Assembly (NCBI GenBank): GCA_977016875.1
Contig: CDRNST010000002.1
Span: 930,001 to 994,000, forward strand
DNA length: 64,000 nucleotides
Direction: 5' to 3'
Source: Pavona decussata
Taxonomy: Eukaryota
Program-made: the position numbers and the translations under genes
Shown: piece by piece, positions 1-25,950 of the stretch
How positions within the stretch are numbered: the stretch's first letter is position 1
Layout: the number at the start of each line of letters is the position of its first letter
The notes under the pieces: model-generated
What the model was told of the DNA's origin: nothing
Database searches by the model: none
The model's input: only the letters and a program-made list of their open reading frames with translations

Positions 1-1031
1 ATGTTCTGATTCGCTGTCTATGCGTATCTTTATAAATGGAAATTATGGTCGCATATAAAATGCTAACGGCTGTTTTGCCTATGTAAAGCGTTTTATAAGC
101 GTATAGAGAGAAAATAAGAAAATTTGTTAAAAATATTTCCTCGATTTAATTTCCCACATTATCACTACGAAAAAAAAGCAGCGGCTCAATCAAATACGCA
201 TTTCAGAAACGCGTCATGGCACGACCTTTTTGTAGCTCTGCAGAAATTTAGAAAGGATAGAATAGATCCCCATAGCAAGGGAAAATGTACGTTGGCAAAG
301 TTTGGTTCACTGATTTGCAGTTATTTTCTTGACTTGATTATTCAGCCACTGTAAGAGAGAAGAAATGAAGTACATCAGCGAGGCCAAAACATCACACTAT
401 TGACCCATGCGATGTGATTGGTACAGATTTTTACTCTGGTAGTTCTAACTTTTTTTCAAGTAATTCCCGAAATTGTAATGTTTAACATGACTACGTTGGA
501 CTTAAGTGGAAGGAAAATGTGAAGGCCATAAAACCCAAAGCAAAAGAAATGGATTACTCTGACTTTCGTTCTGGTAGACCTACGAAGTACTTAATAGTTT
601 GATTTCTCTTGGTGTTGAATACCTTTAAACACCCACAAGCGAGGAACAATTTATGTCAACGTATTAAAATTGCGACCGATTTCATTTCTTTCTGAAAGCC
701 AAAATCACAAAAACTTCCTTTCTGGATATTCATTCATTCATCCATTCGTTCGTTCGTTTGTTCGTTCATTCATTCATTGAACGTTTTTCAGAAATCTTTT
801 TACAAGCTTTCTTCTACTGAAGTAGTCTTTTTTTTTTTATTTTTGGTCGGATGTGGGATTGCCATTTTCTGTGTTAAAAATGTGTTTCTTTTCTCTGTTC
901 CGTACTTACCAACTTTTTAATTGTGAAACAACAGGCCGCTTTACAACTTTGCTTTTTAACACTTTTGTTACAACCACTTGTCACGGAGGTGGATAGTTCA
1001 ACAGCCAAACATTAAACCAAGATGATCATTT

Positions 1032-4000
1032 TCACAAAACGAAAACAACATCAACCACCACAACATTTGGATAAAAGAACTTACTATTTTCACGCATCAT
1101 TTCAGCGCTTTGCTTCCTTGTGTCCAAATTCAAGTGGATGTCATCACCAATTAGTACAAAAGGAGCCCAGTAATTCACAGCAAAGAACTCCTCTGACTCT
1201 CGTAGACACTTCATAGCCTGGTGAAGAGCTACACTAGCCGTTTTACCATCTCCAAGATGTTGGTAGAAACTCTTCATGAACTCCATAGTTGCCTGGTCTG
1301 AAATTGCCCAAAGTGAAGCCAGAACAGAACGAGCCCCAGCAGCCAAGAAAGCCCGAGCAATTCCGACGACACCCTCAGACTTAATCCCTCCTCTGCCACT
1401 ATGACAGCAACTAAGCACAACCAGTTTTGCTCGCAGCTTAACAGCTTGGACATCCGACATTTTTAACATGTAGTTGTCTTCCTCAGGACCCTTGTTCTTT
1501 GCTCTTGATCTTGAACTTCCATCGTAATGTTTTTGCCATCCTGGATTTGGAGCCAAAGCAATTTCTCCCGTTTCCTTTCTTCCATGAGCTGCGATATGAA
1601 CCAAAGCGGCCGAAGTAATTCGTTTTAACACCTCGTCTTTGGTTGCCTCTGTTCCTGTTAGTGGTGGAATCTTTAGGATTTCTCCTATCATCTCTACTTC
1701 CTTTCTGGCACATGGCAGTTGCCTGTACTTTGGATACTCGACATTCCCCAGATATGGATCTCCGACAAGCAGTGCCTCCTGCACACTTTTGCAGTCCTCA
1801 GGGCGATCTGTGATCAGTCTTAAACTGGTCAACGAGGGTACAGTGCGGATGTGGATAGATGTGCTCAGAGCAGAGAATGGAGCCAGGCAAAGAGGACCAT
1901 CGGGGACAACGATCAATTCGTTACCTTGACACAAGTCTGCAATGGGGCCAAGAATTGCATCATGTAATGGTTGTAACGCATTGATGGTCCATTGTGAGGG
2001 CACTCCTTGTTTATCTTCATCCTCTTCATCATTGTCATCAACATCACGATCATCTAGCTCATCCAGTGAACGATTCTCACATTTTACGCGGACACGAACT
2101 CCAATTTCCTTCAAAGTAGTATTCAACAAGGCAGTCACTGCATCTTCGTCCGCTCTTCCCTGTTCAAATTCCTTTTCTCGAAACTCAACCTTGCTTCCCT
2201 TGCTGATAATCCAGAAAGTGATTTTGTTGCGCCTGTGACCCAAGAAAACCGTTTTCGTAAATAACTTGTTTGAGATGAAGGAAATGGTTTCTTTAGGTTC
2301 AAGTAACGTCGATGGAGATTCTGTGATACCATACTGTGTTTTTAAGATGTCAACCAAAGTCTGTGCTCGACCTGCCTCAGCAGCACACAAAGCCTCATCT
2401 GTTCTTCCCAGCCTCAATAGGTTTTGCCAAAGATTACTGTAAGCAGCACGATAAAGTTCCCGAAAACTTATTTTTAAGGCGTCTTCACGAGTAATGGAAG
2501 CTCTGACAATATCAAGTATATTTACACTATCTTGATAACATTCACAGGCTTCCTGAACCTTTCCAAGAATTTGATTAATGTTGCCGAGGTCATTGTAGGC
2601 CTGCCCTTCCATGGCTGTATCGCTTACTTCCTTTGCTATTTTCAGACACTTTTCTTGATACTCTATGGCCTTTTGGGCATTTCTCATACGCAAATAAAGG
2701 CAACCAAGTTTGCCATAGGCCTGACCTTCTCCGTCTCTATCGCCTACTTCTTTGGCTATTTTCAGATAATTTTCATAGTACTCCATGGCCTTTTGAAAGT
2801 TTCCCAGTCCCTCATAAGCGATGCCGAGGTTGCAATAGGCCGCACCTTCTCCAGCTCTATTGCCTACTTCTTTTGCTATTTTCAGACAATGTTCCTGGTA
2901 CTTTGTGCCCTTTTCCAAGTCGCCCAGGCACAGATAAGCGCCGCCGAGGTTGCCATAGGCCCGACCTTCTCCGTCTCTATCGCCTACTTCTTTGGCTATT
3001 TTGAGATCCTTTTCATGGTACTCTATGGCCTTTTTGAAGTTGCCTAGGCTCTGATAAGCGTTTCCGAGGTTTCCATAGGTCACACCTTCTCCAGCTCTAT
3101 CGTCTACTTCTTTTGCTATTTTGAGATCCTTTTCATGGTACTCTATGGCCTTTTGGAAGTTGCCCAGGCTCTGATAAGCGTTTCCAAGGTTGCCATAGGT
3201 CCCACCTTCTCCAGCTCTATCGCCTACTTCTTTTGCTATTTTGAGATCCTTTTCATGGTACTCTATGGCCTTTTTGAAGTTGCCTAGCCTCCAATAAGCG
3301 TTGCCGAGGTTGCCATAGGTTTCACCTTCTCCAGCTCTATCGCCTACTTCTATTGCTATTTTGAGATCCTTTTCATGGTACTCTATGGCCTTTTGGAAGT
3401 TGCCCAGGCTCTGATAAGCGTTTCCGAGGTTTCCATAGGTCCCACCTTCTCCAGCTCTATCGTCTACTTCTTTTGCTATTTTGAGATGCTTTTCATGGTA
3501 CTCTATGGCCTTTTGGAAGTTGCCCAGGCTCTGATAAGCGTTTCCAAGGTTGCCATAGGTCCTACCTTCTCCAGCTCTATCGCCTACTTCTTTTGCTATT
3601 TTGAGATGCTTTTCATGGTACTCTATGGCCTTTTGGAAGTTGCCCAGGCCCTGATAAGCGTTTCCAAGGTTTGAATAGTTCCTACCTTCTCCAGCTCTAT
3701 CGCCTACTTCTTTTGCTATTTTGAGATGCTTTTCATGGTACTCTATGGCCTTTTGGAAGTTGCCCAGGCTCTGATAAGCGTTGCCGAGGTTGCCATAGGT
3801 TCCACCTTCTCCAGCTCTATCGCCTACTTCTATTGCTATTTTGAGACGCTTTTCATGGTACTCTATGGCCTTTTGGAAGTTGCCCAGGCTCCGATAAGCG
3901 ATTCCGAGGTCTCCATAGGTCCCACCTTCTCCAGCTCTATCGTCTACTTCTTTTGCTATTTTGAGATGCTTTTCATGGTACTCTATGGCCTTTTGGAAGT

Positions 4001-4711
4001 TGCCCAGGCTCTGATAAGCGTTTCCGAGGTTTCCATAGCTCCCACCTTCTCCAGCTCTATCGTCTACTTCTTTTGCTATTTTGAGATCCTTTTCATGGTA
4101 CTCTATGGCCTTTTTGAAGTTGCCTAGCCTCCGATAAGCGTTTCCGAGGTTTCCATAGGCCCGACCTTCTCCGGCTCTATCGCCTACTTCTTTTGCTATT
4201 TTGAGATCCTTTTCATGGTACTCTATGGCCTTTTGGAAGTTGCCCAGGCTCTGATAAGCGTTTCCGAGGTTTCCATAGCTCCCACCTTCTCCAGCTCTAT
4301 CGTCTACTTCTTTTGCTATTTTGAGATGCTTTTCATGGTACTCTATGGCCTTTTTGAAGTTGCCTAGCCTCTGATAAGCGTTTCCGAGGTTTCCATAGGC
4401 CCGACCTTCTCCGGCTCTATCGCCTACTTCTTTTGCTATTTTGAGATCCTTTTCACGGTACTCTATGGCCTTTTGGAAGTTGCCCAGCCTCTGATAAGCG
4501 GTGCCAAGGTTGCAACAGGCTCTTCCTTCTCTGGATCTATCGCCTAGTTCTTTTGCTATCATCAGATCCCTTTCTTGGTACTCTATGGCCTTTAGCAAGT
4601 TGCGCTGGTTGTGATACGCGAAGCCGAGGTTGCAATAGGCTTTTCCTTCTCCGGATCTATCGTGTGCAGAATCTTTCTTTCCCATCTTTTTATGTGAGAG
4701 TGTAGCGAAGT
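1032..4711 (-). CDS. Terminal giant exon of a TPR-CHAT (TTC28-like architecture) protein: 18 x 40-aa TPRs plus a CHAT caspase-like peptidase domain
   Basis: 1217-aa ORF with repeats [40 protein letters not shown]. CHAT motifs are VVPDGPL, HIAAHG (His 1584-1586), LVVLSCC (Cys 1404-1406), AFLAAGA and WAPFVLIG. A phase-1 acceptor tttctacag| at 4711 is in frame with the ORF, so the ATG at 4685 is probably internal. Confidence 0.93.
2505..4664 (-). repeat. Coding tandem repeat of 18 x 120 bp (TPR array); units 3-14 (2985-4424) nearly identical
   Basis: 120-bp periodicity is directly visible in DNA (e.g. tttcatggtactctatggcc recurs every 120 bp). Confidence 0.97.
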
Positions 4712-5949
4712 CTGTAGAAATTTACATAGGGGACATACTTATTCTATGAATACATTTTAAAGCCTGTTCATACAGGCACTACTTTAGGGTTGTTTGTATG
4801 TGCTTATGGAAATCAAAAAATATAACTCGAAAGAGGAAGAAATGACGTTCATTGCTTGAACTTAAAAGATTTCTTAAGTTGATCTGCGTCTAGTAACATT
4901 TACGTAGACTGTTGTATTTTAGAGGTATTCCTAGATAAGTTAGGAAGTCTCGCTTGAAATGTTTTAGTAATCTAGACTGAGGGAGTCTATATACAGTTAA
5001 TGTACAGGAAATGAAAACTTTGAGTATGCAGATGGAGTCTATACCGTAAAATACCCCTATAAAAATTGTGAAAGCGCAGATATTATCATGTCCAGAAACT
5101 CCCAGTTAGGCACTGGTCTAATTTACTTGTTCGCTAAGACTTCTTTCCAATAAGTACAAGGAGTTCTTGAGTACTTTTAAGAGCAATATGACCTAGTGGT
5201 GGTAGAAGTGTTAAGGTCAATATCGCTCATATTTTGGTAAAGCATACAGTCTGTAGATAGTTTTAACAATTACTACTTCCTTTGGTTAAAATGTGGTGCA
5301 AATAGACGGCATTTTGTAAAAATTTGGAAGGCTCGTGTATCAAATTTGAATTAGTGACGCATTTGAAGATAACATGTGGTTTTCTAGTGCAAACTTAAAT
5401 AAGTTATATATTTAAAACGTGATTAGAAAACTTAGGTTTCCTTGCAAGTAGGACGCTTTTAATAGAATGGTCTATAATTTGGGATTGTTTTTTTTTTCCT
5501 TGCCAAGCTTTGCTTTTATGCGCCGCTTTTTCCGATTACATAAAAATTGCTTAAGCAAATAATCTTGAATCACCCAAAGGGTCTCGTATTAAACAACGTC
5601 TTAATCGTAAACCTGGTCTTCACACCGTAGACAATGGTCTGTCTTAACAGAATGGTCTGGGAAAAGTAAACTTTATAAGTATAACAAGAGAAACCACTAG
5701 TAGACCAAAATACAGGACGTGGAATGAAGGGCTAGATCAACTGTAATAAATTAATTTTGCTTCAAGGTTAACAGAAATTAGCGAAGAATCTAACGTCTCA
5801 ACATTTAAACACGAAGTTTTAATAAAACAAATAAAATAACTTACTATTTTTCGCCATAAAAATTGCCTCAAGTGTAGCAGCCCAACAAGACTAATCGTCA
5901 CAAAACCAAGTTTGAGTAATTTTTAGTTGCACATTTTGCTTTCAACTTC

Positions 5950-9948: not shown

Positions 9949-12900
9949 CCTCGCGCTGGGGCTATACGGCGTACTGGGGCGCGTCCCCCGGTTGGTGGAT
10001 GGGGGAGCCCTCCCTTTGGGGGGTTGCACCTGAATAATACGGAATAGGGTGCCGTGGACCAACATAGCCTAGGAGAAGCAAAACTCTGATTCCAAAACCG
10101 GGCAGGTGGAGCTCGTTAGCCTTGGCAGGCAGTTCATCTAGGAGACAGAAAACTCTGATTACAAACCCGGACAGATGGAGTTCGTTAGCCTTGGCAGGCA
10201 ATCGTCTAGGAGTGGAAAACTCTGATCTCAAACCCGGGTAGATGGAACTCGTGAGCCATGGTCGGCTATCATTTAGGAGAAGGAAACTCCAAGTGAAATC
10301 ACCCCTCCCTCCAGGCTGGGGGTTAGACACAGGGCTAACAACCCTGTTCTGTAAAAACAAGTCTTGTTGCGGAAACAGCAACAAAGGAAAAGAACACTTC
10401 TAGGTGTGACAGGCTTCCAGAGTCATCGCAAGATACTCGTGTGACTGGCAGTGGTGAAAACCGAATGGAAGCCACTGACAGGAGGATGGAAGTCTTAAGC
10501 GCCAAAACCAGAACCAGGATTGGTTTCTGGAATGTAAGAACCATGTATGAGACCGGGAAGCTAGCGCAAGTTACAGCAGAGATGAGGCGCTACAATCTAC
10601 ACATTCTTGGAGTCAGCGAGAGCCGATGGACAAGATCCGGTAGATACAGAACCAACACGGGGGAGACAGTGCTCTACAGTGGTAGAGATGACGATCAACA
10701 CCACGAAGGAGTCGCAATCATCCTTAAAAAGGGAGTGGAAAAGTGCCTGATGGAGTGGAAGCCTATTAACAGCAGGCTGATGAAGATCAGATTGAGAGGG
10801 AAGCACATCAATACCACCATCATCCGGTGCTACGCACCAACCAACGACAGTGAGGAAGAGAGCAAGGAGGCTTTCTATGAACAGTTGCAGGCTGAACTGG
10901 AGAACACACCAGGACATGAAATGAAGATAGTGATGGGCGACTTGAATGCCAAAGTTGGAAGCGATAACACCAACTACGAGATAGCCATGGGTAAGGAAGG
11001 ATGTGGAAGCATGAACAACAATGGAGAGAGACTGCTGGAATGCTGCGGGACATACGACCTTTTCATTGGCGGGACTCTCTTTCCACACCCAGACATCCAC
11101 AAACTTTCCTGGTGTTCCCCCAACGGCAGAGACAAGAATCAGATCGACCACCTGATAATCAACGAGACGTGGAGGAGATCGCTGCAAGACGTTAGAGTGA
11201 GGAGAGGAGCAGATGTTGGCAGTGATCACCACCTTGTCACTGCAACTCTGAAAGTGAAACTGAGAAAGAATGGACCTGAGAAACCAAGACAACAACAGTT
11301 TGATGTGGAGAAGCTGCGCGACCCCAAAGCAAAGAATGCCTTCATCCTTAAGCTGAAGAACAAGTTCCAAGCTTTGGCAGATGCTGAAAACTACACCCAG
11401 ACAGAGTCAGCGGGAATCGACACCGCGTGGAAGCAAGTAAGATCAGCCTACACACAGACCAGTGAAGCTTGTTTAGGAAGAGGACGAAAGAGGAGGAAAG
11501 AGTGGATAACAACGGATACCTGGAAAGCCATTGAGAACAGGAGAACCCTTAAGAAGAGAGTGTTGGAGACCAAGTCAGAAAGGCTGGAAGAGAGGTACAA
11601 AAAACAGTACAGGGAAGCTGATCAAACAGTGAAAAGAATGGCTAGGGCCAACAAGCGGGCCTACGTGGAATGCCTTGCAAGGGAAGCAGAAGAGGCCGCG
11701 GCCAGAGGAGAACAAGGACGGGTGTACAAAATCACTAAGCTCGTCAGCGGCAAGTACCGGGGATCTACAGACACACCCATCGCAGATAAACAGAGACGGA
11801 TACTAACAACAGAAGCAGAACAAGAGGCGAGATGGGCAGAACATTTCAGCGAAGTTCTAAACAGACCACCACCAACCGCTCCAGCGGATGTACAGGACCC
11901 GGCTAAAGACCTGGATGTAAACACAACGCCACCTGAGAAACAAGAAATTGTAGCAGCCATCAGATCCCTCAAAAACGGAAAGACCCCTGGTCAAGACAGC
12001 CTCAATGCAGAACTCTTCAAGGCAGACCCAGAGCCTGCAGCGCAAGTTCTTCAGCCACTCTTTACAGCCATCTGGGACGAGAAACAACTACCAGAGGATT
12101 GGACGGAAGGCGTCATAGTAAAGATCCCAAAAAAGGGAACCTTGAGCAATTGTAATAACTGGAGAGGAATCACCCTCCTGTCTGTTCCAAGCAAGATCCT
12201 CGCAAAAATCATCATCAAGCGAATTGAAGAGGCAGTGGACCAGCAACTCCGAAAGGAGCAGGCCGTTTTTCGACCAGGAAGAGGGTGCACAGACCAAATA
12301 TTTACTCTGCGAAACATCATCAAACAGTGCACAGAATGGCAGAGACAGTTGTACATCAACTTCGTAGACTTTGAAAAGACCTTTGATAACATCCATCGAG
12401 CGAGTCTATGGCGCATTCTCAGGGCATATGGAATACCGCAGGAGATTGTTCTTGTCATCAAGAGTTTCTACAACAACTTCACATGCATGGTAGGAAGCAG
12501 CGAGACCAGCTTCAGCGTGAAGACCGGTGTTAGACAAGGCTGTTGTATGTCTGCGATGCTCTTCAACTTGACAATCGACTGGGTGATGAGGCAGACAACA
12601 GCAGACCAATCAGATGGACCCTCTTGACACAACTTGAAGATTTGGACTTTGCTGACGATCTAGCACTCATGTCGCATACCCACCAGCACATGCAGGAGAA
12701 GACGTCCCGTCTAAATACCTTTGCACAGCAAGTAGGCTTGAAGATCAGCCAGAAGAAGACGGAGGTAATGATGCTGAACGTATCAAACCCATCACCTGTC
12801 ACAGTAAATGGAGAAGATCTACCAACGACCGAAGAAGTTACATACCTTGGGAGCACTGTCAGACATGACGGTGGGGCAGGCAGCGACATCAAGAACCGCC

Positions 12901-13442: not shown

Positions 13443-15250
13443 GTAGGACTTACAGCATCTTGATCATTCACAGGATTAGCTAAATTCGTTATTTTTTTAT
13501 TATTTATGTCAATATCTGTCTGTATCTGCATATCTCCATTTTATATTCAAACATCTGGTCCTTTATATTATCATAAACAGCTGAATCAACACTATCAGAC
13601 CAATCTTTACGCCATAAGTAATCAGATAGCTCTGTACTGGAGTCGCCGTTGCTGTCCCGTGCATAGTGAAATAAATGTAATCCGGTGTGTCTTTGATTCC
13701 TTCATCTATTTTAACCAACACCTTAGAATAACAAGAGAAATCTTTTTGCACCTGCGAGTGCATATAAGCTGTAGTAGCCTGGCATGTTACTTGTATATTT
13801 GTCATTTAAGGAGGGTAAAATTTAAACACAATTTTATATGTTCCAATATCTAGAGGGTAAATATTGAATCCATTCCTTGATCTGTAATCATCAGATCCAG
13901 CGTCCTTTGTCAAAACTATGTCATGGAGCTTTTTTATTTCGATGTGGTGATTGATTGAAATCAACTATACCACTCACTGTGAAATTATATTCAGAACTGC
14001 TCTCGTCTTGATCTATGAGGTATTTGAATGAATTTGTTTTATGAGACGATATTTAATGTGATTTAGCGAGTGTATCTTCAATGTATTTTGTTTTGCTCGC
14101 ATCTCCATCATGATAGAGTGTTCTTAGATTATTGTTTCCTCACCAGTCATAGCATTAGTACCATCCTTACTCAAAGCTAAAGAAAATGCATCATTGATTG
14201 TATTTGCTACAAAAGCAATACTATTTGACAAGTAATCAATATTTACAGCGTCATTAAGTTCATTAGGATCTGGATTTGTGACATTGGTAAGGTTGTTTCC
14301 ATCAAGATTCAAATCGGCAGTCATTTCTACGCTTCCATCCTTTTTAATATAATCCGATGTGTTTATGATTGGTATTTTGGCTATCTCGGAATCAACATAA
14401 CTTTTAATAACAGCTTCATGACTACTTGTAGCTGCAGCAAGATTTTCAATTTTGTTTTGTTATTCATATCAAGGGCAGCCTCCATTGGAAATAATTTTTT
14501 TACGCGATAAAAATATGTCTCTTGCTGCTCTATAACTTACAGCTTTGTTTGTATTTTCTTGTATTGGATATGGTTGAGATTGAAGAATGAGATCACCTGT
14601 AATTGCATCTCTCGACGTTTCCTCAAACATGTCATTTTGTGCTATTCTTTGTTTTGCTAATTCACCATCAACATAAGATTTATTTACAGCATCATTATTA
14701 TACATAGGATTTGCCACTTGTCTCTGAAAACCTTTTTACTAGTGATCGTTTGGTCCACAGAAGAGACCATTATTTCACTTCTTCTCCGACCACCATAACC
14801 ATCATAGTTTTTAATATCCGGGATGTATAAATGCACGTTGTTATATGATTGATGTTCAGTCATGATTCGTATTTCATCAGAATTACCAGCATCATCCGCA
14901 TTATCTTTCAAATACAAGCTTCGTGTGTGTAATGCACTTGTTGATAAATATATAGCTGCTATGTTCTTAACAACGTAACCAGCTCTTGCCCCATCCAACA
15001 ATTGAATTTGTCTATTTGCGACGATATCATTTAGACCTGTACCTTGTTTCACATTGACTAGCTTTTTGTTTTGTATATCATAGTCACCGTCACCTGTTAA
15101 TTTGAGATCGCCCTTTTCACCTTTGCCAAATGATTCATGATACAAATATTTTTCAGGTAGTAAACCGTTTGAATAAGTCATTATAGAAATATTTTAGATT
15201 ATATCTTCTCATCAAAGTTTTTGGCTTTTAAGTTTCGTTGTTTATCAATA

Positions 15251-15850
15251 CAGTTGAACCTCTCCACAACGGCCACCTAGGGGACAGAAGAAAGTAACCG
15301 TTGTGGAGAGGTGGCCGTTATGGGGAGGTAGGGGTGTAATATGACACCCTTTTTTTCCGGGAAGTACAACATGTTTATTGTGCTAAGTTCATGCTTACTG
15401 TAGCCTATAATGGCAATCCAATCTTAGATAATATATACAGCTAAAAAACACAATAAAACGTAAATAATGTTTTGAATCAAAATGTTAACAAGACGAAACG
15501 AGCAAGGTTCGCAACATTCGCTGTATTATTGTAGACAATTTATGCTTACTGCAGCGTATATCATTAAAATGGATACAGCCGTGAGAAACGTAATGTTCCG
15601 AAGACAAATGTCGATTACTGCATCAACTTATAAAAAAAGGTTTTTACAAAAAAGAGCTGTACTGGCCGTGCAGAGGTTATTTTGGCAGTTGGGGACGCAC
15701 TTTAGTGGCCGTTGCCGTTGTAGAGAGGTGGCCGTTGTAGAGAGGTTTAAACAAGAGCTAATGTATGGACTGTCCGCCGGGACAAAAAAAAGTGGCCGTT
15801 GTAGAGAGGTGGCCGTTGTGAAGAGGTGGCCGTTAGTGGAGGTTCGACTG
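15251..15850. mobile_element. Tc1/pogo (Tigger-like) MITE inserted in the Polinton; copy at 23481-24080
   Basis: TIRs CAGTTGAACCTC / GAGGTTCGACTG; TA TSD; internal GAGGTGGCCGTT subrepeats. Confidence 0.85.
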
Positions 15851-15852
15851 TA

Positions 15853-17720
15853 TATGGGAAGCTATACGGGTCTCTGGTTGCTTTTCCATATTCATATTTG
15901 CCGATATTTAGCTCTCTACATATCATGTTTTTCTTAACTGATGTGTTTGAAAGCTTTAGGAAAACATGTCTTCAGTATTACAAACTAGACCCATGTCACA
16001 ATTTCACGTTTCCAGGTTTGAGTTGGGATTCAATGTTGAAGATGACTGATATTAAACTAGATCTTATGTGTGATATTGATAAGTTTCAGTTCATTGAAAA
16101 AGTTACAAGGGGAGGTATTTTATATATTGCCAACCGCTATGGAAAAGCAAACAACAAGTACACGGAAAACTACGACGAAAGCGCACCGTCGAAGTATATT
16201 ATGTACCTAGATGCTAATAATATTTATGGTTGGGCAATGAGTCAAATTCTACTACGAGAGGATTCTAATGGTTTAAACGTGATGACATCAATAAAATCGA
16301 ACTATTCATGCACAAAAAGAATAGTGAAAAAGGATTGATCCTTGAGGTTGATCTTGAATATTCTTAGGATTTGCATTTGCATAGTCGGAATGACTACCCT
16401 CTTGCTGCTGAAAAAATGAATGTTGACGAAACTATGTTGTCAAAATATTGAGGGCAAATAAGAAATAAATATGGTATGACAAAAATTAATCCCAACCTTG
16501 AACAACAAACAAAAATATGTGCTTCATTATCGAAATCTTGAACTGTATATCAAACTCGGATTAAAAGTAACCAAAGTTCATCGGGAGTTAGAGTTCAATC
16601 AATCAACTTGGCTAAAGAGGTATATCAGTTTTTTTTTAAAAAAAGAACCCCTGCTAAAAATGCTAATGAATAACAGTGTTTTTGGAAAAACAATGGAGAA
16701 TATTCATAAAAGAGTGAATGTGAAACTAGTGACTGATCGACAAAAATTAGCAAAATTAGTATCTAAACCTAGTTGTATCAGTAGTAAGATTTTCAATAAT
16801 GATCTCGTAGCAATTCATAAAATCAAGGAAACGATAGAGTTGAACAGACCGGCTTATGTAGGAATGTGTATTCTTGATTTGAGCAAGACTTTGATGTACA
16901 AGTTCGATTATCATCATAATAAGAAAAATTATGGTGATAAAGCTGAACTGTTGTTTACTGATACAGACAGTTTGACTTATGAGATTGAAGCAGAACATGT
17001 TTATCAAGATTTTTGAAAAAAAAAAATAAGTTTGATAACTGCGATTACCCAGAGGACACTCCATTCTTTGACAAAACGATTAAAAAAGTGATTGGTAAAT
17101 TTAAGGATGAAGTTGCAAGTATTCCGATCAATGAAAAACTGATCATCCATGTGCTTCTCTTTGCCAGTATAATCTGATTCTCCTTTTCCCTTTTCATCTC
17201 TTTTCTATTGTAATATTAATGATAATAAAAAATTACATATAATTTACTTTAATTTTGATGTATAGCCTTTTCTAAATCTGCATTGATTATGTAAAGTTAA
17301 GTTTTCCGTTTTCTAGCATGTTTGTAATTTACTGTAATTTTTTTGTCTTGTACCCCCGTGACTAGCTTTGTGGCTATTTGCGGGACAAGCCCTTTATATA
17401 ATCTAAATCTGCAAATAAATTGTTGTTGTTGTTGTTGTGAGTTCGTTGGTTTGAGATCAAAGACGTATTCGTATCTGAAAGAAGACAACTAAGGAGGAAA
17501 GACTGCACAGGGAATCAAAAAATTAGTGATGAAAAAAGATATTGAACACGAAGACTACAAACAGGTTTTATCAAAAAAAATGAACAGGTTTACCACAAGA
17601 TGAAAACAATCAGAAGCGACAGCCACGCGCTTGGAAGTTATCAGATTCTCAAAACGCGCGTTTTGATTTCAATATGATGAAATCAAAAGTTTCGCCTACG
17701 GACATTATAAAATTCTTGGT
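15853..17720 (+). pseudogene. Protein-primed family B DNA polymerase (pPolB), 5'-truncated and frameshifted
   Basis: Motif A YLDANNIYGWAMSQ, motif B KMLMNNSVFGKTMEN, motif C LLFTDTDSL, GKFKDE, FVGLRSKTYS, and C-terminal AYGHYKI. Confidence 0.9.
17134..17437 (+). mobile_element. Short LINE 3'-end fragment inserted in pPolB; copy at ~25363-25666
   Basis: Interrupts IPINE|FVGLRSK and ends AATAAA(TTG)n. Confidence 0.55.
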
Positions 17721-17995
17721 TAACTTAAGCGTTGGTAAACACAATGAGACTAGTGTGAGGGAAAGTCCCATGACATCATCAACTTCCTGCTTTTCCGAGA
17801 ATTGTGACCTCCTGTTCATGAGATGTCATGCAATGAAATAGCATAGATCACCGACGCATTTTACCGTCTGTTGGTTACGAGCACAATTTGCCATCTGATG
17901 GATGTTGTATATGAGTTGGTGGGTGTAGTAAAGGAGTTGGTGAGATATCAGCATAAAATGTGCTGGTTCGACTCAACTCCTATACTACTATTTTG

Positions 17996-19640
17996 ACATG
18001 GTTCGCTCTGCTTATTTTGACAGGCGTGGGAACCAACTTGCTCTTCTCCCATTTGTCGTTGTCAAACCAACTCCCCTATGGAAGGCGAAAACGTTTTCTC
18101 AGTTCATCATACACCATCTTCTGGATGTACAGTTCAGGTGTGCTTGGGAGGTATGTGGAATGAATCCCTGTGCTAATAAAGAACGAAAAAGCGGCGCAAC
18201 TCCCTCACCCATGTTTCAGCATTTTACAACTTTGCTCGCACAATTGTGTCCGTCAGAGAATGTCCCCTTTTGTATTATACAGGGTGAATCTGTATATTTC
18301 CCTAAGTAGAGGCCTCTGTGACTACAGTTGTTCGTGAGCACTTGTTTTAGGTGAGGCACTGATAGATAGTATTCGTAGTATGTTCTCTTCAAATAGTGTC
18401 TAAGAAGAGTTAGCTCGGAAAAGTCCAAGAACCTCTACTTTGATGAAGTCTCGTTTAACTCCATATTGGTGCCATTGAAGAGAAGAAAGTGTACTGAGAG
18501 GTCTCAATGGGCTTAAAATGGTGCTTACATCGAGCACTTGTTCCTCTCTAAATCTCTCACGTTGGTGTCAAAGGAGTTATTTTTCTCTTTCAGATATTTC
18601 AGCCGTGAATTTGATAGTGGAATGGTACTTATTAGGTTGTTCAATGAACTATACAATTTGCTTTCTGGTTGTGTTTCAGACGGAAAAATGTCATCCATAT
18701 AACGTTTTCAAACAAGTAGTTTTAGATCGCTTTGGATTACAATATTTGTTTCAGCCTTTGTTATGAAGATATTGGCGAAGGCGACTGCCATTTTTCGTAT
18801 ATCCATAGCAGTTGAGATATGTCAGAGCGGAGTTGTTGTTTCATATAAGGTGATTTAAAACTTTCACAATATGTGAATTCTCTCCTCTTGTGGTATATTT
18901 GTGTAAAGACTCGTTGAGTCCATCGAAACAAGGATTGTGTCTTATAGAACTTTTTTTTTGCTGAAGGGGTTTATCAATGAATGATGATAGTTTTTCTGTA
19001 GGTCCACCACACCCTAATTTCTTCAACTCTTTATTTGTAAAGGGACGCTGACTTTATGGTTAGGGCAACATATGAAGCCTTACAATGAAAAACGTTCACT
19101 TAATAGCTTTGGCCAGTTCAAATGTGAATTTCAAGACAACAATAGAGCCTGACAGCCACAACTTGAGTAACTTTACTTGGGTAGCTTTTAGTTCCACTGT
19201 ACGTGCTGCGGACGTTTGGATAACTTGTTCTGGCGGCCAGCATTTACGAACTACTATCCACTCAATCATTTCATCTCCCCTGATGAACAGGATGGCTGTT
19301 GTTTCCGGTTATCTGGGTTTTGCTTAACCAGGTCTTGCTGCACAACAGCGAGAACTTAGCCTTGGTTCCAGGTGTACGTGTCCAGTGAGGCCTTCGGAAA
19401 TGTCAGAATCAATGATACTACACTAAGTGAGTTTTGTCTTAGATGGTAGATTATAAGTTAAGTGAATAAAGATGGAGGTAGCAACAGGTTCCATGAACAA
19501 GAAAAAGTTCCGCAGGGGCTTTTGTGGTCCCGCGTTCTCCCAGGTGGCTTGACTTGGCGTCCTCCTCCAAGGACCGAAGACCAAAGTCATCATCGGAATA
19601 TGAAACTGTACTCTGATTACGACAACCTTGTTGATCAATA
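17996..19640 (-). mobile_element. Decayed Penelope-like retroelement RT remnant; copy at 26225-27870
   Basis: CGGPTEKLSSFIDKPLQ and HFKPIETSQYTFFSS (cf. FKPTETFQY...SSCHP); heavily degenerate. Confidence 0.55.
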
Positions 19641-20275
19641 AAGTTTCTTGTTCTTTTTATAATATATTTCAACTTATTTTTTTTAAGACGTTAGGTTACT
19701 TCATAATCCGCGTTAATTCGGCCTCTGTCGATTTCTTATTTGTGCTGTTCCTAGGATCTAGAAACTTGAATTACGCATATTTCCAAGACATTTCCCTTTG
19801 GAGTTTTCATACATTTTGTATTCTCAAACCACCAAATTTTTTTGAGCTTAAAACCACGGTAATTTGTAGGATCGCGTTTTTGTTTATAAAAACCAAATGG
19901 TACGCAAACAGCAGGGTACCTTTGGGAGTTCCTGTAGAACTAAAACCATTTAGCCAAAATCTACTGTCTAGAGAATAAGGTAGTATTGATAAAGTTTGAA
20001 TCTCAAGTCAAAAACTCAAAACATATTCTTATTAATTATTACAACATTTTACATTCACTTGTTTTAAAAAAGAATTTGCATTCGGTGTTTTGGGGTTTAC
20101 AATATACTTTTATTGTCCGTGTTATGCGTCTGCGATCTAATGAGCAACGACCTTCAAATATCGACCAGCAAATGGACAGATAACCTTTTGGAATTCCTTT
20201 CGTAGAGTTTTAGGCTATTCAGATAAATTGAATAACGATATGAAAATCTTGTAAGGCCACAAAATTTATGGTGAA

Positions 20276-20591
20276 CTGCGGATGAAAGATCAAATAGAAG
20301 AATGATCCTTGCAGTTAGTACGCAACCTATGCAGTTGCAAAAAGAAAGGCTGAAAAAAATTTTCATCCGCAGTTCAAAATATATAAGTTTCGCATACTTA
20401 CATTCATTTATTCATTTGTCACATGTATATTACGGACTCCAATATGACCAGCTCCCAGTTGTCTTGATAGCTCAGTTGGTAGAGCACGAATCCCGTTCAA
20501 GCCTGAATTTTGTTCAGGCTTTCTTTTCGTAACTGCTTAAGTTGCGTAGTAACTGCGAGGATCTTTCTTCTATTTGATCTTTCATCCGCAG
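20276..20591. mobile_element. Fold-back repeat with a tRNA-derived core; copy at 28505-28820
   Basis: Inverted arms CTGCGGATGAAAGATCAAATAGAAG... surround an A-box TAGCTCAGTTGGTAGAGC with a truncated tRNA body. Confidence 0.65.
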
Positions 20592-21454
20592 CTCAAAATA
20601 TATATGTTTCATATATTTACATTAATTATTATGAGAGTAGCTTAAAATTCCCGACAGCGAGTTTAATCCAGCATGCCACTTCTTCTCTCTCATTTTCAGA
20701 TATGGAGAATGGGAAGTCACTAGACTCACCCTCCCCGTTCCCATTTTTGGCGTATAAGACTTTTATAATAGCTTATGATCATGGGTGACGGAAAAAAAAC
20801 ATTTTTGGATCATTTATTACGAGAGATTTTGTCAGTAGCCAAAAAGCTTGTTCAAAAATTATATAACTAAAGTATATATTAGGTTAGATGAATACTCATA
20901 CAAATAGGGCATTGAAAAGTTCATTAAAGAAATGTCTTTTTATTGTGGTGATTCTTTAGGCTGCGGGATTTGTTAATTTTAGGTTTTGTTGAATCGTTTT
21001 TGCCAAACATTTTCATGTTTCATGTCTTCTAGTATTAAATCTCCGCCCGCGTGACATTAATGTGAAGCCATCAACGTCACATCGGTGATACATTCGTTGG
21101 CAATCGGGCCATTCAGATGGATTTAAACAAAGGTTTGCTTTCATTTTCTAATAAATGAAAGTCAAAATAGAACTGCATTTTATAAAATTCCACTTTACCG
21201 CTCATAGAAATTTTTTCGCCAAAATTTTGGTCGCGGAAAAATTTAAATTCTAGTAGCCTTTCTCAGTGGTTATGAAATCATTTTTATCTCAAGGCGTTCT
21301 TCGTTAAAGGAAGAAGCTTAAAGAACTTACTACACATGTAATTTCAGTTTTCTTCGCTCTTTTATCACTCTTTCTAGTTTGATACGCGAGCCTTTCAAAC
21401 TTACTTTCATCAATGTTCTGTGTTCCCTAATAGCTTATAAGACATCAGATTCAC

Positions 21455-21548
21455 CTGAATCTTCCTCTCCGTCTGTATTTCGTAGCTTGTTGCTTTCATT
21501 GACAGATCTCCTCCTTAGTTCCACCAATTTCTGGTTATTATTGCTAAT
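21455..21548 (-). CDS. Duplicated copy of exon 5 (5')
   Basis: Identical to 29684-29777 (offset 8229). Confidence 0.55.
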
Positions 21549-21868
21549 CTTACATCAGTCAAGATCTATAACAAGCCGGTTGTAAAAATTATCTAAAGCT
21601 TAAAAATCCTTCAGACCGGACGAAAGTTCTCACGGAAAATGTGTGTTAATTCTTTGCCTGCTTTTCTTCTATGTTTCTTTCTCTTTTTCCTTCTCTGACG
21701 GGGAAGTTAAGGACAACAGCGAAATTGAAATCATCGTGAAGACTAAAAGAAATTTTTGTAATGAGAGTTACACTTAGAAAGTACGCACACAAAAGCAAGA
21801 ACGAAAGACTTATGTAAAGTTTGAATATGACAAATCTTTTCCATTGAAGCATCTGTAGTGAAGGATAC

Positions 21869-21936
21869 TGCCAATCCCTTTTCACACCACGTGATGGCTT
21901 CCTCAAACTGATTCAGCTGAAAGGATGCACTTGCTC
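21869..21936 (-). CDS. Duplicated copy of exon 4 (4')
   Basis: Identical to 30098-30165; the acceptor is retained about 10 nt from the duplication junction. Confidence 0.6.
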
Positions 21937-24082
21937 CTAATAGAAATAACAAGAGAAATCTTTTTGCACCTGCGAGTGCATATAAGCTGTAGTAGCCTGG
22001 CATGTTACTTGTATATTTGTCATTTAAGGAGGGTAAAATTTAAACACAATTTTATATGTTCCAATATCTAGAGGGTAAATATTGAATCCATTCCTTGATC
22101 TGTAATCATCAGATCCAGCGTCCTTTGTCAAAACTATGTCATGGAGCTTTTTTATTTCGATGTGGTGATTGATTGAAATCAACTATACCACTCACTGTGA
22201 AATTATATTCAGAACTGCTCTCGTCTTGATCTATGAGGTATTTGAATGAATTTGTTTTATGAGACGATATTTAATGTGATTTAGCGAGTGTATCTTCAAT
22301 GTATTTTGTTTTGCTCGCATCTCCATCATGATAGAGTGTTCTTAGATTATTGTTTCCTCACCAGTCATAGCATTAGTACCATCCTTACTCAAAGCTAAAG
22401 AAAATGCATCATTGATTGTATTTGCTACAAAAGCAATACTATTTGACAAGTAATCAATATTTACAGCGTCATTAAGTTCATTAGGATCTGGATTTGTGAC
22501 ATTGGTAAGGTTGTTTCCATCAAGATTCAAATCGGCAGTCATTTCTACGCTTCCATCCTTTTTAATATAATCCGATGTGTTTATGATTGGTATTTTGGCT
22601 ATCTCGGAATCAACATAACTTTTAATAACAGCTTCATGACTACTTGTAGCTGCAGCAAGATTTTCAATTTTGTTTTGTTATTCATATCAAGGGCAGCCTC
22701 CATTGGAAATAATTTTTTTACGCGATAAAAATATGTCTCTTGCTGCTCTATAACTTACAGCTTTGTTTGTATTTTCTTGTATTGGATATGGTTGAGATTG
22801 AAGAATGAGATCACCTGTAATTGTATCTCTCGACGTTTCCTCAAACATGTCATTTTGTGCTATTCTTTGTTTTGCTAATTCACCATCAACATAAGATTTA
22901 TTTACAGCATCATTATTATACATAGGATTTGCCACTTGTCTCTGAAAACCTTTTTACTAGTGATCGTTTGGTCCACAGAAGAGACCATTATTTCACTTCT
23001 TCTCCGACCACCATAACCATCATAGTTTTTAATATCCGGGATGTATAAATGCACGTTGTTATATGATTGATGTTCAGTCATGATTCGTATTTCATCAGAA
23101 TTACCAGCATCATCCGCATTATCTTTCAAATACAAGCTTCGTGTGTGTAATGCACTTGTTGATAAATATATAGCTGCTATGTTCTTAACAACGTAACCAG
23201 CTCTTGCCCCATCCAACAATTGAATTTGTCTATTTGCGACGATATCATTTAGACCTGTACCTTGTTTCACATTGACTAGCTTTTTGTTTTGTATATCATA
23301 GTCACCGTCACCTGTTAATTTGAAACCACCACCAGGATCGCCCTTTTCACCTTTGCCAAATGATTCATGATACAAATATTTTTCAGGTAGTAAACCGTTT
23401 GAATAAGTCATTATAGAAATATTTTAGATTATATCTTCTCATCAAAGTTTTTGGCTTTTAAGTTTCGTTGTTTATCAATACAGTTGAACCTCTCCACAAC
23501 GGCCACCTAGGGGACAGAAGAAAGTAACCGTTGTGGAGAGGTGGCCGTTATGGGGAGGTAGGGGTGTAATATGACACCCTTTTTTTCCGGGAAGTACAAC
23601 ATGTTTATTGTGCTAAGTTCATGCTTACTGTAGCCTATAATGGCAATCCAATCTTAGATAATATATACAGCTAAAAAACACAATAAAACGTAAATAATGT
23701 TTTGAATCAAAATGTTAACAAGACGAAACGAGCAAGGTTCGCAACATTCGCTGTATTATTGTAGACAATTTATGCTTACTGCAGCGTATATCATTAAAAT
23801 GGATACAGCCGTGAGAAACGTAATGTTCCGAAGACAAATGTCGATTACTGCATCAACTTATAAAAAAAGGTTTTTACAAAAAAGAGCTGTACTGGCCGTG
23901 CAGAGGTTATTTTGGCAGTTGGGGACGCACTTTAGTGGCCGTTGCCGTTGTAGAGAGGTGGCCGTTGTAGAGAGGTTTAAACAAGAGCTAATGTATGGAC
24001 TGTCCGCCGGGACAAAAAAAAGTGGCCGTTGTAGAGAGGTGGCCGTTGTGAAGAGGTGGCCGTTAGTGGAGGTTCGACTGTA

Positions 24083-25950
24083 TATGGGAAGCTATACGGG
24101 TCTCTGGTTGCTTTTCCATATTCATATTTGCCGATATTTAGCTCTCTACATATCATGTTTTTCTTAACTGATGTGTTTGAAAGCTTTAGGAAAACATGTC
24201 TTCAGTATTACAAACTAGACCCATGTCACAATTTCACGTTTCCAGGTTTGAGTTGGGATTCAATGTTGAAAATGACTGATATTAAACTAGATCTTATGTG
24301 TGATATTGATAAGTTTCAGTTCATTGAAAAAGTTACAAGGGGAGGTATTTTATATATTGCCAACCGCTATGGAAAAGCAAACAACAAGTACACGGAAAAC
24401 TACGACGAAAGCGCACCGTCGAAGTATATTATGTACCTAGATGCTAATAATATTTATGGTTGGGCAATGAGTCAAATTCTACTACGAGAGGATTCTAATG
24501 GTTTAAACGTGATGACATCAATAAAATCGAACTATTCATGCACAAAAAGAATAGTGAAAAAGGATTGATCCTTGAGGTTGATCTTGAATATTCTTAGGAT
24601 TTGCATTTGCATAGTCGGAATGACTACCCTCTTGCTGCTGAAAAAATGAATGTTGACGAAACTATGTTGTCAAAATATTGAGGGCAAATAAGAAATAAAT
24701 ATGGTATGACAAAAATTAATCCCAACCTTGAACAACAAACAAAAATATGTGCTTCATTATCGAAATCTTGAACTGTATATCAAACTCGGATTAAAAGTAA
24801 CCAAAGTTCATCGGGAGTTAGAGTTCAATCAATCAACTTGGCTAAAGAGGTATATCAGTTTTTTTTAAAAAAAGAACCCCTGCTAAAAATGCTAATGAAT
24901 AACAGTGTTTTTGGAAAAACAATGGAGAATATTCATAAAAGAGTGAATGTGAAACTAGTGACTGATCGACAAAAATTAGCAAAATTAGTATCTAAACCTA
25001 GTTGTATCAGTAGTAAGATTTTCAATAATGATCTCGTAGCAATTCATAAAGTCAAGGAAACGATAGAGTTGAACAGACCGGCTTATGTAGGAATGTGTAT
25101 TCTTGATTTGAGCAAGACTTTGATGTACAAGTTCGATTATCATCATAATAAGAAAAATTATGGTGATAAAGCTGAACTGTTGTTTACTGATACAGACAGT
25201 TTGACTTATGAGATTGAAGCAGAACATGTTTATCAAGATTTTTGAAAAAAAAAAATAAGTTTGATAACTGCGATTACCCAGAGGACACTCCATTCTTTGA
25301 CAAAACGATTAAAAAAGTGATTGGTAAATTTAAGGATGAAGTTGCAAGTATTCCGATCAATGAAAAACTGATCATCAATGTGCTTCTCTTTGCCAGTATA
25401 ATCTGATTCTCCTTTTCCCTTTTCATCTCTTTTCTATTGTAATATTAATGATAATAAAAAATTACATATAATTTACTTTAATTTTGATGTATAGCCTTTT
25501 CTAAATCTGCATTGATTATGTAAAGTTAAGTTTTCCGTTTTCTAGCATGTTTGTAATTTACTGTAATTTTTTTGTCTTGTACCCCCGTGACTAGCTTTGT
25601 GGCTATTTGCGGGACAAGCCCTTTATATAATCTAAATCTGCAAATAAATTGTTGTTGTTGTTGTTGTGAGTTCGTTGGTTTGAGATCAAAGACGTATTCG
25701 TATCTGAAAGAAGACAACTAAGGAGGAAAGACTGCACAGGGAATCAAAAAATTAGTGATGAAAAAAGATATTGAACACGAAGACTACAAACAGGTTTTAT
25801 CAAAAAAAATGAACAGGTTTACCACAAGATGAAAACAATCAGAAGCGACAGCCACGCGCTTGGAAGTTATCAGATTCTCAAAACGCGCGTTTTGATTTCA
25901 ATATGATGGAATCAAAAGTTTCGCCTACGGACATTATAAAATTCTTGGTT
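24083..25950 (+). pseudogene. Second copy of the pPolB relic (tandem duplication)
   Basis: Near-identical to 15853-17720. Confidence 0.9.

Follow-up and report, generated by a model that had tools for sequence, protein, structure and literature searches.

A reshuffled tetratricopeptide repeat array on a predicted CHAT protease in a gene of the coral Pavona decussata

The window analysed here is a stretch of 64,000 nucleotides (nt) from the genome of the coral Pavona decussata (assembly GCA_977016875.1, contig CDRNST010000002.1, positions 930,001 to 994,000 of the forward strand). Its minus strand carries a single open reading frame (ORF) of 1217 residues, in which a long array of tetratricopeptide repeats (TPRs) is followed by one CHAT domain. 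Taken as a whole, the gene is probably best explained as a member of the coral TPR-CHAT family, with a reshuffled array of the LGN/TPR_12 type that acts as a variable binding module on a CHAT protease. In this family, the arrays resemble fungal NLR recognition domains in their behaviour, and the protease joined to them remains under constraint with its catalytic residues preserved.

As a kind, the gene is not new: judged by its sequence, it is a member of the published coral TPR-CHAT (‘TTC28-like’) expansion, one of the largest gene expansions of reef-building corals. According to Takeuchi et al. (2025; PMC12314368), there are 276-362 TPR-CHAT copies per coral genome, the length of the TPR part varies widely, and tandem copies have arisen in regions that are non-syntenic and rich in transposons; the authors suggested a link to ligand diversity and immunity; the expansion had been noted earlier in Montipora (PMC9145168) and Pocillopora (PMC6208414). 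The likeness of our gene to these proteins, with which it shares direct sequence homology, extends to the long N-terminal TPR stretch, the single C-terminal CHAT domain, the hundreds of copies and the variable length of the TPR part. More than 4,700 relatives are found in the databases, the named ones coming from the stony corals Oculina and Stylophora (“Tetratricopeptide repeat protein 28”), and the identity to the Stylophora ‘TTC28’ and Oculina models amounts to 47-50%. In its own 602-Mb genome, a scan for the CHAT half yielded at least 87 scored matches and 473 candidates. While the expansion itself is already published, the present analysis adds a site-specific pattern of selection, the anatomy of concerted evolution within the array and a probable N-terminal module of the co-chaperone type. 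In those parts of the text of the coral TPR-CHAT papers that our search covered, there is no mention of hypervariable codons, homogenisation within arrays or sites evolving faster than synonymous change, and no description of a co-chaperone-type N-terminal module.

A repeat array and a CHAT domain in one open frame

Tandem Repeats Finder detects a 120-bp period with 17.1 copies at window positions 2614-4662 (score 2894), and cutting the 1217-residue frame in a register of 40 codons yields 18 TPR units. Pfam assigns TPR_12 (PF13424, E 4.9e-138) and TPR_7-type repeats (PF13176, E 5.5e-119) to residues 1-720 and one CHAT domain (PF12770, E 5.6e-49), matched over profile positions 4-289 of 289, to residues 904-1181. 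TPR and CHAT are the only Pfam content of this frame; a P-loop nucleoside triphosphatase (NTPase) of the NACHT or NB-ARC type was sought in it and is absent among the 29 matched Pfam families. The initial annotation of the window, made from its letters alone, had proposed a sensor without an NTPase domain that is coupled to a protease, and the domain content of the frame agrees with this architecture. Its statement that the whole array sits in one exon holds in the sense that the open frame is uninterrupted. Likewise, array and protease do lie in one frame, as it had assumed, but they are unlikely to make up the entire protein, since TPR exons of the co-chaperone type, located about 25 kb upstream, are very likely part of it, too.

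The twelve central units (units 3-14) differ from each other at 1-17 of 120 nt (mean 7.7), and while their DNA is 93.5% identical, their protein sequences are so at only 88.1%. They correspond to the stretch that had previously been singled out at 2985-4424 as twelve near-identical units, in a register shifted by 7 codons relative to ours: position 8 of that numbering is our unit position 15 and, in the Pfam TPR_1 alignment, TPR position 2. All variable positions listed there are present with the residues given, namely 8 (R/G/E/V), 9 (A/S/T/N), 11 (G/S), 12 (N/D), 15 (N/I), 18 (Q/R/W), 19 (S/R/G) and 33 (H/D/R), together with the two-state positions 1, 24 and 38. In total, 11 codons of the core units vary in amino acid, and four more vary synonymously only. 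Seven of the 11 fall within 12 consecutive codons of helix A (hypergeometric P = 0.008), and on a helical wheel the variable residues lie about 180 degrees from the conserved G/Y/L packing residues. The further claims about the composition of the array were accurate as well: variants occur in mosaic combinations, since 37 of the 78 informative site pairs in the array fail the four-gamete test, units 5-6 repeat units 3-4 with 2 and 1 nt differences, and divergence is greater in the flanking units 1-2 and 15-18 (17-62 nt).

The CHAT domain is predicted to be an intact caspase-like (clan CD) cysteine protease with a His-Cys dyad. In structural searches with Foldseek, its model matches the caspase-like fold of the DdvA CHAT domain, separase, Csx29, SAVED-CHAT and gingipain with a probability of 1.00, with E-values between 1e-12 and 1e-5 for the first four. 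The two motifs with the putative catalytic residues, which contain H1034-G1035 and C1093/C1094 in the numbering of the ORF, show little or no variation across 33 homologs with identities as low as 38%; the His is nearly invariant and the following Gly invariant. Among 21 paralogs, the His motif is retained in all and the Cys motif in 20. This half of the gene is under purifying selection, with a median omega (the ratio of nonsynonymous to synonymous change) of 0.35 for linker plus CHAT among the 21 paralogs. The protease to which the array was said to be coupled thus appears intact and is constrained. Downstream of the domain, the last ~15 residues (window 1032-1080, minus strand) are encoded by a GTT/GTG-rich tract, the frame of which differs among paralogs (N-V-V-V-V... 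or Q-M-L-W-W-L-L...) and is hydrophobic either way; this C-terminal tail is without counterpart in more distant homologs and has low model confidence.

Several of the best fold matches are proteins in which a helical-repeat or sensor module is likewise joined to a CHAT protease: Csx29 of the Craspase complex (type III-E CRISPR), SAVED-CHAT and the anti-sigma factor DdvA, whose proteases are switched on by a binding event. However, the sequence similarity to these proteins is confined to the region of the catalytic Cys, the coral gene has no Cas7-11, SAVED or transmembrane partner, and its TPR array is far longer and repetitive. A scan with PADLOC and NCBIfam for bacterial defence families gave weak matches around the catalytic Cys only and no membership: Csx29 (NF041237) scored 18.5 bits against a cut-off of 300, SAVED_CHAT 23.7 bits, far below the family cut-off, and BovA was likewise weak and below its cut-off. 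Separase (E ~1e-10) resembles the coral protein in its helical-repeat N-terminal region and in its C-terminal caspase-like domain, which follows a small extra subdomain. It differs in sequence (11-16% identity) and in being single-copy, conserved and regulated by securin, with repeats that are not homogenised.

Turnover of the units and selection on single codons

Each of the 12 central units is closest to another unit of its own array, at a mean of 3.0 nt versus 6.0 nt to any other array. For units 15-18 and unit 2, by contrast, the closest sequences are the corresponding units of a neighbouring paralog (L031; contig 2, 1118800-1124000), which lies 188 kb away, has a synonymous divergence (dS) of 0.063 in the CHAT half and carries 25 units versus the 18 found here. 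Units 15-18 are 17-41 nt from the units of their own array versus 9-13 nt from units -4 to -1 of this paralog. These distances show turnover of the central units within the array, through unequal crossing-over or gene conversion, whereas the edge units are anchored. They agree with the recombination-driven turnover that had been proposed from the window. The unit number, a comparison that the initial annotation had suggested, ranges from 9 to 42 among the paralogs that we fetched. Homogenisation is not universal in the family, since some paralogs have old, diverged arrays in which a unit and its nearest neighbour differ at 12-15 nt. Another array, in paralog L032 (contig 486), comprises 30 units with a higher-order repeat of six units in three copies; therefore, arrays also grow by multi-unit duplications. 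For alleles, the public-run data consist of short Logan contigs, some of which contain joints where a net 600 or 840 nt, equal to 5 or 7 units, is missing. The sides of these joints measure only 20-24 nt, and we do not count them as allelic variants of unit number.

Within this array alone, the ratio of nonsynonymous to synonymous differences (Nei-Gojobori pN/pS) is 0.60 overall and 0.24 outside eight chosen codons; at these eight, which were chosen after seeing the data, it is 1.16 and not significant. This single-array signal of selection is suggestive but no proof. As the array alone proves nothing, 20 complete and 8 partial paralogous genes from the closer subfamilies of the same genome were added. 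For each of the 29 arrays (425 units in all), the units were joined in a minimum spanning tree, along which changes were counted codon by codon; this gave 936 synonymous and 2455 nonsynonymous changes in total, and omega was calculated with a correction for the transition/transversion ratio (kappa) and a bootstrap over the 29 arrays.

In the family as a whole, amino-acid change outpaces synonymous change at four or five codons of the unit. These are unit positions 15 (TPR position 2; omega 3.2, bootstrap interval 2.7-3.8), 25 (TPR 12; 3.0, 2.5-3.8), 26 (TPR 13; 2.0, 1.5-2.7), 40 (TPR 27; 2.3, 1.8-3.0) and, with a reservation given below, position 12 in the turn at the N-terminal end of helix A (2.0, 1.4-2.7). 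For these five codons, omega rises to 2.5-4.9 when only the youngest edges of the trees (at most 8 nt) are counted. Unit positions 11, 18, 22 and 23 have values near 1, and the scaffold codons have values of 0.1-0.5. The same codons come out on top in an independent set, in which the four C-terminal units were compared with their positional orthologs in other paralogs. CpG hypermutability was considered as the cause and rejected for unit positions 15, 25, 26 and 40, where CpG transitions account for 1-15% of the changes. Hence, the expectation of a dN/dS above 1 at the variable codons was borne out across the family for positions 8, 18, 19 and 33 of the earlier numbering, but did not reach significance in this array alone.

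To place these sites in the TPR fold, we relied on Pfam TPR_1 numbering, the helix borders in the last two units of a structural model, a helical wheel and the literature. The model, an AlphaFold2 prediction of residues 641-1217 from a 33-sequence alignment, has a predicted local distance difference test score (pLDDT) of 79.9 and a predicted template-modelling score (pTM) of 0.80; its last two TPR units, with a pLDDT of 94-97, delimit helix A as unit positions 10-26 and helix B as position 30 to position 6 of the next unit. A prediction of the 720-residue array without an alignment was unusable (pLDDT 40.9, spurious strands). Magliery and Regan (PMC1261162) identified TPR positions 2, 5, 9, 12, 13, 33 and 34 as those that vary most and assigned them to the concave face; positions 2, 5, 6, 9, 12 and 13 are, in their account, the ones through which HOP binds its peptides (PMC1261162). 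In this numbering, a location on the concave face fits both the positions of high omega (2, 12 and 13) and those near neutrality (5, 9 and 10). Moreover, in solved TPR-peptide complexes the concave ligand groove is lined by helix A, and the codons at TPR positions 2, 12 and 13 map to the exposed face of that helix.

The closest solved match to the TPR part is the TPR domain of LGN/GPSM2/Pins (22-24% identity), and Foldseek places the TPR part of the model next to LGN-peptide complexes. LGN shares the unit of about 40 residues with the G-N-L-G-N-x-Y motif and forms a superhelix that binds extended peptides in its inner channel; unlike the coral gene, it has eight diverged units and no protease. 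In their evolution, the arrays resemble the repeats of fungal NLR proteins (the WD40 repeats of the HET-E/NWD type and the TPR and ANK repeats of Podospora), which are near-identical, undergo reshuffling by concerted evolution, vary in number (PMC4986451) and are under positive selection at a few codons of the concave face (Dyrka et al., 2014; PMC4986451), a pattern that is seen here at the family level. Fungal arrays of this type have an internal repeat conservation of about 85% or more, a level that the 12 core units of the coral array exceed in both DNA and protein. The coral gene differs from them in its animal host, in having a C-terminal CHAT effector and no NACHT or NB-ARC domain, and in that the variation in unit number found here is among paralogs.

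A possible role in recognition and its alternatives

How might such a protein work? The array may form a variable binding superhelix, with the order of the units and the hypervariable residues setting the binding target. By analogy with separase, Craspase and SAVED-CHAT, binding could either recruit a substrate to the protease or relieve its autoinhibition. The N-terminal co-chaperone-type TPR module encoded by the upstream exons would probably be part of the same protein, and a large, fast-diversifying repertoire of such proteins could serve non-self recognition, be it of pathogens, symbionts or allogeneic tissue. At the family level, a reshuffled, diversifying binding module on an intact protease is supported, and to this extent the overall reading of the initial annotation finds support; the function as an immune sensor, which it also proposed, is something that we infer. 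In its most far-reaching form, this idea would describe a germline repertoire of several hundred intracellular receptor-proteases, diversified by unit reshuffling and selection on the groove, with NTPase-free signalling through the protease that is possibly coupled to Hsp70/90 by the N-terminal module, and thus an animal counterpart of both the hypervariable fungal NLR repeats and the bacterial CHAT defence proteases. We regard this form as tentative and rather doubtful. The likeness of the arrays to fungal recognition domains, together with the constrained protease, turns a vague ‘maybe immune’ label into something testable, with residues that would determine specificity, a cysteine to mutate and a splice junction to seek, and provides coral immunology and the study of allorecognition with a defined class of candidate receptors that have no NTPase.

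A number of points weigh against a selected, immune binding module. Besides the non-significant ratio at hand-picked codons in this array, omega is high over the arrays as a whole (0.7-0.9), and it was obtained by counting on minimum spanning trees rather than from a recombination-aware codon model. Of the five fast codons, unit position 12 is the least secure because CpG transitions make up 31% of its changes, so that its excess is partly CpG-driven. The claim that the variable sites line the ligand groove holds for positions 8, 18 and 19 of the earlier numbering, which are TPR positions 2, 12 and 13 on the concave face (PMC1261162), but TPR positions 27 and 39 are not classical concave-face or groove positions. 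Some paralogs carry stops or have lost the ATG, and given these defects and the high omega of the arrays, part of the family may be decaying. Finally, human TTC28 acts in cytokinesis, not immunity (PMC12314368).

The high omega of the arrays and the non-significant ratio in this one also speak for a neutral by-product: a repeat homogenised by unequal crossing-over in a fast duplicating and decaying family, which would have the least constrained surface residues as its variable sites and no variable recognition function. The closest paralog is without an in-frame ATG, in-frame stops occur in many family members, and the family resides in transposon-rich regions of variable copy number (PMC12314368). 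Relaxed constraint, however, pushes omega towards 1, and not to values of 2-5 with intervals that exclude 1. Furthermore, it is the same five codons that stand out in two independent data sets, while the scaffold codons stay far below 1, and the CHAT half has a low omega and retains its catalytic motifs in 20 of 21 copies. Likewise, frames of 900-2200 residues are open in most close paralogs. We therefore consider a neutral origin unlikely; if it were true, the gene would be an ordinary member of a fast-evolving repeat gene family.

Less probable still is a variable binder with a non-immune role, which would act as a substrate-recruiting protease or scaffold for many host substrates in the cell cycle, apoptosis, bleaching or chaperone-linked quality control. 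The human homolog TTC28 (TPRBK), which also combines a TPR array with a CHAT domain but is single-copy and has diverged repeats, functions in mitosis and cytokinesis (PMC12314368, PMC9145168), and a role in apoptosis or bleaching has been suggested in Pocillopora (PMC6208414). In addition, separase is among the closest fold matches, and the module that probably forms the N-terminus resembles those of Hsp70/90 co-chaperones. Yet canonical TTC28 is reported to form a separate, conserved orthogroup in acroporid corals (PMC9145168), and hundreds of lineage-specific paralogs with variable copy number and a site omega above 1 are typical of genes involved in conflict or recognition, not of housekeeping genes. 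Lastly, it is very improbable that the near-identical units result from repeat mis-assembly: although long 120-bp arrays at 93% identity are hard to assemble and the run data are short contigs, the units show specific mosaic differences, the frame is open over all 18 of them, the same organisation with differing unit numbers is found at twenty other loci, the array sits on a 3.5 Mb contig, and contigs from independent runs with the same species label match it at 97-100% identity.

Candidate upstream exons and neighbouring features

In an alignment of 21 paralogs, about 250 nt upstream of the ORF are conserved, including a splice-acceptor-like motif, TTTCTACAG. The exon would then start at 4711, with the in-frame ATG following 26 nt later, and no stop interrupts the reading frame across the motif. 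In the closest paralog, ATT replaces this ATG, yet a frame of 1504 residues with its 25 units is open, which fits either a start in an upstream exon or a young pseudogene.

Further upstream, five candidate coding exons (Table 1) have phases that chain to phase 1, as the large exon needs. They encode a TPR module of the Hsp70/90 co-chaperone type (TTC4/Cns1-like) and a charged linker; when searched singly, they match TPR families only, and the PDB sequence matches of the second exon are the co-chaperone TPRs of Hop, Cns1 and PP5. This second exon has at least 150 copies in the genome, with an open frame in about 40 of the 44 best copies; almost all close TPR-CHAT paralogs have one on their own strand, 8-30 kb upstream. 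In the Stylophora “TTC28” model P0080, the order is co-chaperone-type module, array and CHAT. Given the phase chain, the pairing of exon and paralogs and the architecture of P0080, the coding region probably starts at 31919 and is interrupted by an intron of about 25 kb that is full of mobile elements. In view of these candidate coding exons, we no longer favour a non-coding 5' exon with its end near 5127.

Logan contigs from RNA libraries, 97-100% alike, cover the CHAT half and parts of the array. None of them lies on 4601-5200, though DNA runs cover this stretch, and among these short contigs no RNA junction between the upstream exons and the large exon was seen. The RNA contigs are compatible with a spliced transcript of this gene or of a close relative, without being proof of it.

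Table 1. Positions of the gene parts and of other features in the window
Feature	Position	Strand	Basis
Large coding exon, 18 TPR units + linker + CHAT	1032..4685 (stop included)	minus	ORF list, Pfam
Units 1-2, diverged N-terminal cap	4446..4685	minus	17-39 nt from core units; closest are the paralogs' corresponding units
Units 3-14, twelve homogenised 120-bp units	3006..4445	minus	Pairwise nt differences, nearest neighbours
Units 15-18, diverged C-terminal units, positional orthologs across paralogs	2526..3005	minus	Unit distances
Linker, residues 721-903: helices, then a small beta-sheet subdomain before the CHAT core, with an acidic low-confidence loop	1977..2525	minus	AlphaFold2 model
Predicted CHAT caspase-like protease domain, residues 904-1181	1143..1976	minus	Pfam, Foldseek, omega
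Putative catalytic His1034 codon, motif H-I-A-A-H-G	1584..1586	minus	Conservation in homologs and paralogs
Putative catalytic Cys1094 codon, motif L-S-C-C-H-S	1404..1406	minus	Conservation in homologs and paralogs
Splice-acceptor-like motif TTTCTACAG	4712..4720	minus	Conserved in 21-paralog upstream alignment
Five candidate upstream coding exons: 31919-31829, 31296-31135, 31026-30949, 30165-30098, 29759-29684	29684..31919	minus	AG/GT borders
LINE-like (long interspersed nuclear element) endonuclease + reverse transcriptase ORF	10441-12627	plus	
GIY-YIG nuclease ORF	46747-47244	plus	
Reverse-transcriptase fragment	56085-56636	minus	
67-bp tandem repeat, 3.3 copies	10069-10289		Tandem Repeats Finder
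(ATTC)n microsatellite	728-778		Tandem Repeats Finder

The putative large intron also contains an 8.23-kb tandem duplication (13724-21946 and 21941-30175; 99.73% identical), which copies the fourth and fifth candidate exons; their second copies lie at 21936-21869 and 21530-21455. As these two exons comprise 144 nt together, both copies could be spliced in frame.

Elsewhere in the genome, a subfamily with about 60% identity (contigs 39, 79, 80 and 105) has exactly one in-frame TGA or TAA in the CHAT half of nearly every copy. This stop could reflect a short intron, or a pseudogene lineage that continued to duplicate. The open frames of this subfamily step by 40 residues (831, 911, 951, 991, 1031, 1071 and 1111).

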